From positions 19,468,001 through 19,532,000 of the forward strand of contig NC_047066.1 in NCBI RefSeq assembly GCF_902459465.1: a stretch of 64,000 nt of DNA, written 5' to 3'. The notes under the pieces were generated by a model. It made no database searches. It was not told the DNA's origin and saw only the letters and a list, made by a program, of their open reading frames with translations. The first letter of the stretch is position 1. The number at the start of each line of letters is the position of its first letter. The position numbers and the translations under genes are program-made. The DNA comes from Asterias rubens. Lineage: Eukaryota. Positions 5,985 to 8,900 of this stretch are shown here, in pieces.

Positions 5985-8900
5985 TTATTTATTGCGACGC
6001 ATTTTCATTTCGGTCTTTACAATTTGTCTTCCCGGCCAAGTAAACCAACGAATACCGCGATACTCGATACCCGAAGCGTTCACTCGATGCGAATATTCGC
6101 CGTTCAGGTTCGATTCTACTGCACAGTCATCGAACCACCAACCTGCCTTGACGAGACCTGCACAGTTTTGGACATCGTTGTTGTCATTGTCGTTGTCATA
6201 GTTTGAGAACGTACGGCCATTCAACGACTCAAAAACACCACCTGATAATAAATAAAGGAAAATTTAAATAGGGACTTCGAGAAAATAGTCATTTTAAAAC
6301 AATAAGCCTGTACACAAAATTACAAACATACTTTGGTTATGCAACTAAGCCGTGGTTTTGGCATAATTTTATTCTCATTTGAAAGTCCAACCAACAACAA
6401 AGTGAAAGTCCATTGACATCAGTCGATATCGGAGAAAGTCGTGAAACTGATAGTTTCTTACCTTTGCAACCAATGAGCTCAATCCGCATTGTTGGCCATT
6501 TCTCATATGTTGTCGGTCTAATGCGAATGTACCGTGCTTGGATAGGCTCGTCGAACATGCTGGTAACGGGGGTTTCATGGTCCGTATTGCCATCGAATAC
6601 CTGCAAAGGAGCACATTTTCGTTTTTTTTGTAGTTTTGTTTATGTAACAACTATTAATAAAAGGTATAAAAAGCGTTCCCGAATGAAAAATGTTCGATCC
6701 GTCGACAAATGAAAAAAGAAAGTACATCAAGTGAATAATAGTTGTCGTTGCCCCCCCCCCTTAATTTTTGATATATTTATTGATTATTATTATTGTGGTG
6801 TGGGGGGGGGTACTTCTTATTCTGAAGGATATTATTCCATGCTCATTTATGTATATGTTGTGTTATCTGGCATGAGTTTGCTTGAAAATGCTTTCAGTTC
6901 AGTCTTCTGAACAAAACGATATCGTGTGCAACAAAACATTCTTTCCAACAAAAAGATATATCAAAAATATCATGGTATTGAAAGAACCACACATTCGCAT
7001 CACATTGCACTCACCTTTGCTGTATCCTGCGATGTCCCACCAACGTAGTACCATTGGCTCTGGTGAGAACTATACTCCACCGTGTACTTCTTTACCCACT
7101 CCCCATCGCCGGAAGCGTAACTTCCCTGCATAATAACACCTTCAACCTGGGTTTGTGTCTTTAGATCCACCTGAAACCATTCTGCTTTATCTGTTTCCGG
7201 GCACCAGTTGCCATCCACACTATTTAGCCGCCCATTACCCTCAGAACAATAAACCAACTCATTTTTGTAAACACTTGATGCTGTGATGCTCGAGTCAGGG
7301 ATGGTGTTGTCTTCCATCCCAAGACGTTGGTGACAAGTTCCATTGACTGAAAAAGCAAAACACGGTCGTTGTAAATAACGTCAAGAGTCATTTTTATTTT
7401 ATTCTTTTCACAAGGGAAGGTGGGACTCAAAAATGCAACCTTGCCTTCCAGTTCAAATTGAATGTTTAAGTTTTCACATAATTCTTATCTCAAAAATTAC
7501 GTATCATTTAAGCATATTTAGTAGTAGTTAATAAAAAGTCGAGTGTTCTCAAGATGTTGCACAGCTAGATGACAATTTCTTCGAAATTGTAGACACAATT
7601 TAACAATTTAATATTAAAAATGAAAATGAAAAAAAAAAAAAACCATGTGGCTCGGGTTTTATTTGGGCATATTCTGTGACAATGACATTAAACCATTTTA
7701 GCATTAGACCTAAGCAGTACAATCCAATATACCTGTAGGTTCAATTCCAGAGACTCCGATACTGAGGGCGTACTTGTCTCCTGTAATGCTGAAGGGTGAT
7801 GTCATTAGAGACATTTTCTGACTCTCTTCATCTGTGAGGTCCACACGGATTGTCCAATTAGATCCATTCTTAGTCAGCAGACGGAGTGCTTCATTTCCAA
7901 GCCAGAACACACTGCTGACATCACCAAATCCTTCTTTGTACTCGAGCCAAGTCCGAGTGAAGTTCACAGACCCGTCGTGGCGCCTTTGGAAAACCTTTGA
8001 ACAAAGTCAATAGAGTGCGCCCCATTTAAATGAGTCTGTGATGTTTAAATATTGCATTAGCAAAATATCTTGCCAAAATGGTTGACTGCTCGATCCCCTG
8101 TCGTTGTCATCAAGGAAAAATACATACTTGTGAATTTCTATTCACGAGTGAATGGACTGAGAATGGACTCCTGATGAAATGAATGCGATGTCGCGTAATT
8201 CACGAGCCTTTAATTGTGACGTCAGATGTACAGACTATCAGTAATGGTATCTAGATCTCTGCAAGCATAATTTGTTTAATTTTAGAGAAGAGAACATGAC
8301 CGGGAGGCATTAGCAGGGTGCTATTTGTTTCGAGTGCAGATGCAAATGTTCACCCAAGTAGCACCAAGGTTCAATTTTGTGCCCACACAGCTAAAATTCT
8401 ATGTGCACACCGTTTGCTTATTTTTCACTAATAATCTGGTTTGGTGGGATGTAGTTCAAGTGACATTTGTGTTTTGTTCTATTGTCATACACACTACGTA
8501 TACTTGATTGCCGGGACTGGTTGGTGCTATTTCAATCATTTGACCTACCAACCAGCCTTTGTCATCTTCCATATGACAGTAGACATCTTTCTTCTCTTTC
8601 ATGCCTGTATGTGACTGTATACTGATCGGGTAAACTCCACTGGTAGTGCTACCGGCATCAAACCAAGCTTGACAGTCGGCATGTTCTGAGAGAGAAAACA
8701 AAACACCACAAAACATCGATTTTTTTTAGGGACATTTTAGCTTGAATTGCATTGGGAATTGTTTTTTCCCAAAATGCATTTGGGAAGAATTATTTCATTT
8801 TAAAAGTTGGCCCGATATGTCAGGACCAAGGTGCACCCCCCCCCCTCAAGAAAAACGGGGGAGAAAGAAAAAAAGAGCAAAGAAGAAGAAGAAGAATACA

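Follow-up and report, generated by a model that had tools for sequence, protein, structure and literature searches.

A discoidin module nested within the fibrinogen-related domain of a tandem gene array in Asterias rubens

How does a complete discoidin domain come to lie inside another domain, and can it be spliced out again? The question is raised by a stretch of 64,000 nucleotides from the starfish Asterias rubens (NCBI RefSeq assembly GCF_902459465.1, contig NC_047066.1, positions 19,468,001 to 19,532,000 of the forward strand; hereafter the window). The window carries a tandem array of genes on the minus strand, P1-P6, located by tblastn with the exon peptides of P2. In P2-P5 the fibrinogen-related domain (FReD) is interrupted by a discoidin domain, which in P2 occupies 6462-7346, exactly exons 5 and 6. 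A sequence-only reading of this interval had taken the module to be a symmetric phase-1 cassette acquired by exon shuffling, and had proposed that splicing exon 4 directly to exon 7 would provide each gene with a switch between forms with and without discoidin. We consider it likely that these are nested lectin-like genes, that the module was acquired by exon shuffling, and that the cassette is normally included.

Position and origin of the discoidin module

Profile searches placed both domains in P2. Fibrinogen_C (PF00147) was matched by exon 3 at profile positions 4-43, by exon 4 at 45-125 and by exon 7 at 144-219, with E-values of 2e-4, 2e-20 and 3e-16, respectively; F5_F8_type_C (PF00754) was matched by exon 5 at positions 1-82 and by exon 6 at 86-127. 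Scored as a whole, the RefSeq protein of P2 (XP_033627169; P0198) reached 156.7 bits against PF00147, for which the cut-off is 22, and its residues 195-328 covered PF00754 positions 1-127 with 94.6 bits (cut-off 28.2). The FReD profile is interrupted at positions 125/144, and what interrupts it is a full-length F5_F8_type_C domain. The first cysteine of the cassette lies 5 residues from its 5' boundary and the last lies 2 residues from its 3' boundary. In solved discoidin domains the first and last cysteines are joined by a disulfide bond that brings the termini together, and this geometry would suit insertion into a loop.

The FReD around the insert was assessed in an alignment of 12 plain FReDs (insects, molluscs, annelid, starfish, fishes, amphibian and reptiles) with P1, P2 and a relative that has two cassettes. 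The sequence preceding the insert aligns with the usual end of subdomain B, 'Y-x-L-x-hG-x-h-x-G', and the sequence following it with the usual start of subdomain P, 'G-D-S-h-x-x-H-N-G-x-x-F-S-T-x-D-x-D-N-D'. In the plain FReDs the cassette columns hold just 2-6 loop residues, and no FReD column is gained or lost at the insert. From the alignment and the translations, the hallmarks of subdomain P are present: an Asp-rich calcium-binding run, a pair of cysteines around GWW, and NLNG. A join of exon 4 to exon 7 is in frame in each of P2-P5 and would shorten the proteins by about 157-168 residues. The earlier expectation that such a splice would restore a continuous FReD therefore holds at the sequence level, the joined product being a canonical FReD.

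As had also been proposed, the exon 4 donor and the exon 7 acceptor are of phase 1 throughout P2-P5, and exon mapping gave the cassette the phases 1-0-1. In P2 the exon 4 donor splits a codon after its first base, exon 5 closes on a codon boundary (intron 5 is of phase 0), and exon 6 contributes one base to a codon that exon 7 completes with the other two; the AG/GT sites are canonical. The lengths previously given for exons 5 and 6 combined proved correct, namely 471 nt in P2 and in P3 (332 + 139 in both), 474 nt in P4 (335 + 139) and 504 nt in P5 (365 + 139). All are multiples of three, and exon 6 measures 139 nt in all four genes. P2-P5 are related by descent and do not amount to four independent trials of symmetry; phase-1 flanks and a length divisible by three were found also in 6 further cassettes, those of the multi-cassette relatives P0154 and P0152.

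By the rule given in a review of the subject, a module must be symmetric to be shuffled, and among extracellular modules class 1-1 is the prevailing type (Patthy 2021, PMC8001218). That the 1-1 symmetry of the module is a signature of exon shuffling, and explains the origin of the insert, was borne out by the recipient intron, the copy number of the cassette and a module in Acanthaster, together with the gap-free FReD described above. A plain FReD of A. amurensis (P0156, mapped exactly on locus L004) possesses a phase-1 intron in a split glycine codon, six residues before the conserved asparagine of 'H-N-G'. This is the same codon as the exon 4/exon 7 boundary of P2-P5, and the intron occurs twice in the fused gene model of P0156. 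A shark ficolin-1-like gene (P0165, locus L008) carries a phase-1 intron in the same aligned glycine codon; additionally, it has a phase-0 intron before the 'V-F-Q-+-R' exon (exon 4), as in the nested genes. The FReD gene of a clam (P0163) is intronless and so uninformative on the recipient intron. Because the shark ficolin and the starfish plain FReD carry the intron at the same codon and in the same phase, we take the recipient intron to be old and the cassette to be the newcomer.

The number of cassettes at this position varies between genes. P0154 of A. amurensis, which is encoded on another chromosome, holds 2 nested cassettes, and the starfish proteins P0152 and P0013 hold 4 each, all at the same position of the FReD. 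Every cassette unit in these multi-cassette relatives consists of two exons with phases 1-0-1. In Acanthaster planci, protein P0041 begins with the same N-terminal domain and continues with discoidin units, again with phases 1-0-1, of which one has a second exon of 139 nt; no FReD exon was found within 8 kb of its locus. Judged from these gene structures, the exon structure of the module would predate its place in the FReD.

The nested layout was found in Asterias only, both in a full HMMER scan with exon 5 (1.8 billion representatives) and in a word-indexed search for which the orthologue from A. amurensis served as query. An amphioxus protein (P0134) contains both domains, arranged in series. 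In the literature searched, no paper on a discoidin domain nested in a FReD was found, and none that joined Asterias rubens, fibrinogen and discoidin; a paper on sea-star footprint proteins mentions FA58C and does not mention a fibrinogen domain.

We propose that a two-exon discoidin module with phases 1-0-1 entered a pre-existing phase-1 intron of the FReD by intronic recombination, and exon shuffling into this intron is well supported by the gene structures compared. The 1-1 symmetry would be the footprint of that insertion and would also have permitted the module to multiply where it lay, so that sister genes hold 2 or 4 of it. The outcome would be a complete discoidin domain nested in a loop at the boundary between subdomains B and P in tandem secreted lectin-like genes. 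The cassette would normally be included in the mature mRNA; in-frame skipping from exon 4 to exon 7 would be possible, and minor if it occurs.

The gene array and its cassettes

The features of the array are collected in Table 1. Locus L005 (fetched through XP_033627167) corresponds to window 28903-1 in reverse orientation with 100% identity over 28,903 bases, which places the window on A. rubens chromosome record LR699096.1 (assembly GCA_902459465.3). RefSeq draws the same exon boundaries in P2 and in exons 1-4 of P3. Its P2 model (417 aa) begins at an internal methionine of exon 2 (window 9110) and lacks both exon 1 and a signal peptide; the putative exon 1 at 10093-10048 appears to be a homologue of the exon 1 annotated for P1. 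Pfam profiles gave no match to the domain encoded by P2 exon 2.

Table 1. Features of the array on the minus strand of the window. Extents of P1-P6 are from tblastn.
Feature	Window position	Strand	Description
P1	373-618	-	its exon 2 only, within the window
P2	5985-10093	-	
P2 putative exon 1	10048..10093	-	ATG, 15 codons, hydrophobic signal-like peptide; G/GTAAGC donor; ends in phase 1
P2 exon 2	8984..9238	-	Cys-containing N-terminal domain; phases 1-1
P2 exon 3	8549..8685	-	FReD subdomain A; phase 1 to 0; RefSeq P0198 agrees
P2 exon 4	7733..7994	-	FReD subdomain B; ends in phase 1; donor CAG/GTATAT
P2 exon 5	7015..7346	-	332 nt; phase 1 to 0; first 110 discoidin codons, including first Cys
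P2 exon 6	6462..6600	-	139 nt; phase 0 to 1; last 46 discoidin codons, including last Cys
P2 exon 7	5985..6241	-	FReD subdomain P, with the Asp run of the Ca site, the Cys pair and NLNG, then stop codon; starts in phase 1
P3	11913-18903	-	
P3 cassette	12387..13514	-	exon 5 13514-13183, exon 6 12525-12387; 471 nt; phase-1 flanks
P4	22324-26148	-	
P4 cassette	23013..24785	-	exon 5 24785-24451, exon 6 23151-23013; 474 nt; phase-1 flanks
P5	29518-33441	-	
P5 cassette	30050..31363	-	exon 5 31363-30999, exon 6 30188-30050; 504 nt; phase-1 flanks; exon 4 end 31594, exon 7 start 29771
P6	35940-36756	-	5' remnant

The paralogs differ in their state of preservation. Exon 5 of P3 contains an in-frame TAA at 13207-13209, a codon that is GGT in A. 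amurensis and in P1 and so differs by three base changes; the stop codon of P3 is confined to the cassette. In P4 the frame is open through exons 3-7 and exon 2 is well matched, and the L005 gene table has no called gene at its position (L005 2756-6577). In P5 three boundaries were re-set, namely the acceptor of exon 3, the donor of exon 4 (to 31594) and the acceptor of exon 7 (to 29771); with these, exons 3-7 read without interruption up to the stop codon. The first cysteine of the P-subdomain pair is substituted in this gene. P6 retains only the N-terminal and FReD-A exons, and a comparison of window 35761-35887 with L001 14983-18459 showed that, relative to A. amurensis, it lacks about 3.5 kb in which exons 4 and 7 and the cassette would lie.

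Several further observations were made in the window. Between P2 and P3, the stretch comprising exon 6, intron 6 and exon 7 (5971-6618 and 11899-12543) is 95% identical over 650 nt, intron included. The same two genes are far more diverged in exon 5, with a synonymous divergence (dS) of 0.48 as against approximately 0 in exon 6, a pattern suggestive of gene conversion across the exon 6-7 stretch. Between P1 and P2, a segment of about 1.34 kb is duplicated head to tail (1260-2597 and 2594-3928; 98.9% identity). Further along, the composition of long stretches is strongly skewed, with a GC skew of -0.70 at 44-46 kb (44000-46000) and an AT skew of +0.25 to +0.33 at 56-62 kb (55800-63000), and in both of these stretches open frames on either strand encode short peptide units in repeated copies.

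Inclusion or skipping of the cassette

Splicing was assessed in sparse Logan contigs of 4 public runs, in which depth over exon 4 was 0-4 and from which rare variants are also dropped. The P2 exon 2-3 junction (8984/8685) was present in an exact-match contig of run X4, and the exon 5-6 junction (7015/6600) in contigs of runs X4 (exact match) and X2. The exon 6-7 junction (6462/6241) was present in one contig, which shows 12 mismatches, together with two deletions of 3 nt, in exon 7. Since these deletions fit exon 7 of P1, which is 6 nt shorter, the source of this contig is most likely the paralog P1 rather than P2. No contig joined 7733 to 7346 (exon 4 to exon 5) or to 6241 (exon 4 to exon 7), the depth over exon 4 being too low to judge either.

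Comparison of P2 between A. rubens and A. amurensis gave ratios of nonsynonymous to synonymous substitution (dN/dS) of 0.21 and 0.12 for cassette exons 5 and 6, beside 0.33 and 0.17 for FReD exons 4 and 7; among the window paralogs, the ratios for the cassette exons were 0.19-0.61, and the substitution counts behind all of these values are small. By these ratios the cassette is clearly under purifying selection, like the FReD exons. A cassette that is maintained by selection implies that the form including it is a working product. Furthermore, the splice sites of exons 5 and 6 are strong, with long pyrimidine tracts and donors of the AAG/GTAAGA type, and introns 4-6 are 205-1299 nt long; strong sites and short introns suggest no weakness in the cassette exons.

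The annotated variants of these genes are of two kinds. Isoforms X1 and X2 of LOC117290043 differ in exons 1-4 (16 aa net) and have exons 5-7 in common, and X1 and X2 of a 'coagulation factor VIII-like' gene differ by an alternative donor, amounting to 12 residues. Protein-fragment searches with exon 4 and exon 7 returned only open reading frames of genomic contigs running into introns, and no spliced fragments. A 245-aa 'ficolin-1-like' protein of A. amurensis (P0155) was considered as a natural plain FReD and rejected, as it represents exons 1-4 of a nested gene read into intron 4; a gene model comprising discoidin and subdomain P lies 650 nt downstream of it.

The sequence-only reading had envisaged that an exon 4 to exon 7 splice yields a plain FReD besides the FReD-discoidin form, which as a regulated event would depend on tissue or challenge. 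We regard this as unlikely. The join is in frame in P2-P5 and gives a canonical FReD with a loop of normal length, and symmetric modules of 3n length are known to suit exon skipping (PMC8001218). The stop codon of P3 lies only inside the cassette, so a skipped P3 mRNA would encode a full plain FReD. A crinoid multi-discoidin gene also has two RefSeq isoforms that differ by 157 aa, the equivalent of one discoidin unit. However, no discoidin-less P2-like FReD isoform is present among the RefSeq proteins of A. rubens or A. amurensis, where the variants of the nested genes are alternative 5' halves and an alternative donor. The contigs, sparse as they are, contain exon 5-6 and 6-7 joints and no 4-7 joint. 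The strength of the cassette splice sites, the shortness of the introns and a constraint equal to that on the FReD exons likewise speak against skipping, and RefSeq gets round the broken exon of P3 by way of another paralog's cassette and not by skipping.

In the crinoid gene (LOC117109513 of Anneissia japonica; P0213 versus P0003) the isoforms are exactly 157 residues apart and the break is in register with the repeat. Either an exon pair of 3n length is skipped in one isoform, or the near-identity of the repeats has produced an artefact.

Even less likely, in our estimation, is splicing between paralogs, whereby exons 1-4 of one gene would be joined to exons 5-7 of a downstream gene, combining variable 5' units with shared 3' units. 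RefSeq isoform X2 (XP_033627168, P0194) joins P3 exons 1-4 (exon 4 donor at 13770) to P1 exons 5-7 across about 15 kb, skipping all of P2 as well as exons 5-7 of P3 itself. Exon 5 of P3 is broken, and P6, upstream of P5, retains 5' exons only. The join itself, however, comes from one predicted model, which Gnomon may have made to avoid the stop codon, and exon 5 is 95% identical between P1 and P3, inviting mis-assignment of reads. The broader idea, that the phase-1 boundaries serve in vivo for mixing parts, either between paralogs or within one (exon 4 to exon 5 of a downstream gene, or exon 4 to exon 7), we hold to be about as improbable as regulated skipping. If it were true, a single cluster would supply a modest range of lectins in different combinations, by a logic comparable to that of the protocadherin variable-exon clusters.

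A reversed history, in which the nested form is ancestral and plain FReDs with the phase-1 intron are former nested genes that lost the cassette, is very improbable. Clean deletion of a symmetric cassette is no harder than its insertion, and the plain genes compared are two, but a shark ficolin gene has the same intron at the same codon and in the same phase. Moreover, plain FReDs are distributed across animals, and the searches made found the nested form in Asterias only.

Certain observations weigh against the account that we prefer, that of an exon-shuffled module which is normally included. The exon 4-5 junction of P2, like the 4-7 junction, is in no contig, and the case for constitutive inclusion is built from the RefSeq models, the selection estimates and the joints of exon 5 with 6 and of 6 with 7. 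In three runs, contigs continue past exon 5 and cover the 3' portion of intron 4 (window 7347-7543): two end at 7424 and 7426, and one, from which intron 5 has been spliced out, ends at 7543. RefSeq, moreover, cuts two other paralogs (L005 35488-41301; L001 10001-17825) exactly at the exon 4/exon 5 boundary, the splice sites being intact, and annotates each as a 'ficolin-like' gene plus a 'lactadherin-like' gene. The contigs in intron 4 and the gene splits could reflect slow splicing, an internal start site or a habit of annotation. As regards origin, the discoidin-only gene of Acanthaster is at most a candidate relative of the donor, and might itself derive from a nested gene through loss of the FReD exons. 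Finally, an AlphaFold2 model of P2 gave block-mean values of pLDDT (predicted local distance difference test) of about 70-95 for subdomains A and B (about 53-55 just before the insert) and 84-97 for the discoidin domain. Subdomain P fell below 50, with only about 9 alignment rows there, and the model gives nothing on the geometry of the nested fold. Subdomain P was thinly aligned, as MAFFT did not set the P parts of the plain FReDs under the query, and a split-row alignment had the same fault.

Known relatives and significance

The products of P2-P5 are probably secreted, because a hydrophobic first exon was found for P2 and is annotated for P1 and P3. FReD and discoidin domains are both known carbohydrate- or surface-binding modules. 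The product would presumably present two such binding domains on one rigid body, and its most likely role, on the evidence of its domains, is that of a two-headed, lectin-like recognition protein.

In several respects the array resembles known FReD lectins, namely the ficolins, FIBCD1, tachylectin-5 and the invertebrate FREPs: the A/B/P sequence, the Asp-rich calcium site, the cysteine pair and NLNG are shared, as is organization in tandem clusters, and the vertebrate ficolin gene has intron positions in common with the starfish genes. In contrast to these lectins, the starfish genes have no collagen, coiled-coil or immunoglobulin superfamily (IgSF) stalk; they possess a Cys-containing N-terminal domain and a FReD interrupted by a second binding domain. 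The module itself matches PF00754 over its full length and has cysteines near both ends, as in lactadherin (MFGE8), EDIL3 and the C domains of factors V and VIII. Unlike those proteins, the starfish genes are without EGF or A domains, and their discoidin domain lies within the FReD. Discoidin and fibrinogen-like domains reportedly occur together in one extracellular protein in Caspr/CNTNAP. There, and in amphioxus P0134, the two domains are contiguous and separate, and not nested.

The module shares with the class 1-1 mobile modules (Patthy, PMC8001218) its phase-1 boundaries, 3n length, occurrence in several gene contexts and in tandem copies, and its nature as a beta-rich, disulfide-closed extracellular domain. 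It differs from them in having landed inside the FReD fold, at the B/P boundary, and not between domains, giving a nested arrangement instead of beads on a string. The array would thus offer a fairly young and clean case of exon shuffling setting a whole domain inside another. The full series is visible, from the empty, ancient phase-1 intron of shark and starfish through the filled intron to genes with 2 or 4 copies, alongside the module in a non-FReD gene. It suggests that introns within domains can accept modules where the ends of the module meet and the site is a surface loop.

RefSeq names such as 'lactadherin-like' and 'coagulation factor VIII-like' mislead for these genes, some of which are split in two. 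A splice switch, if shown, would add regulated valency. For echinoderm immunity or adhesion, the array defines a family of probable two-headed, lectin-like proteins.

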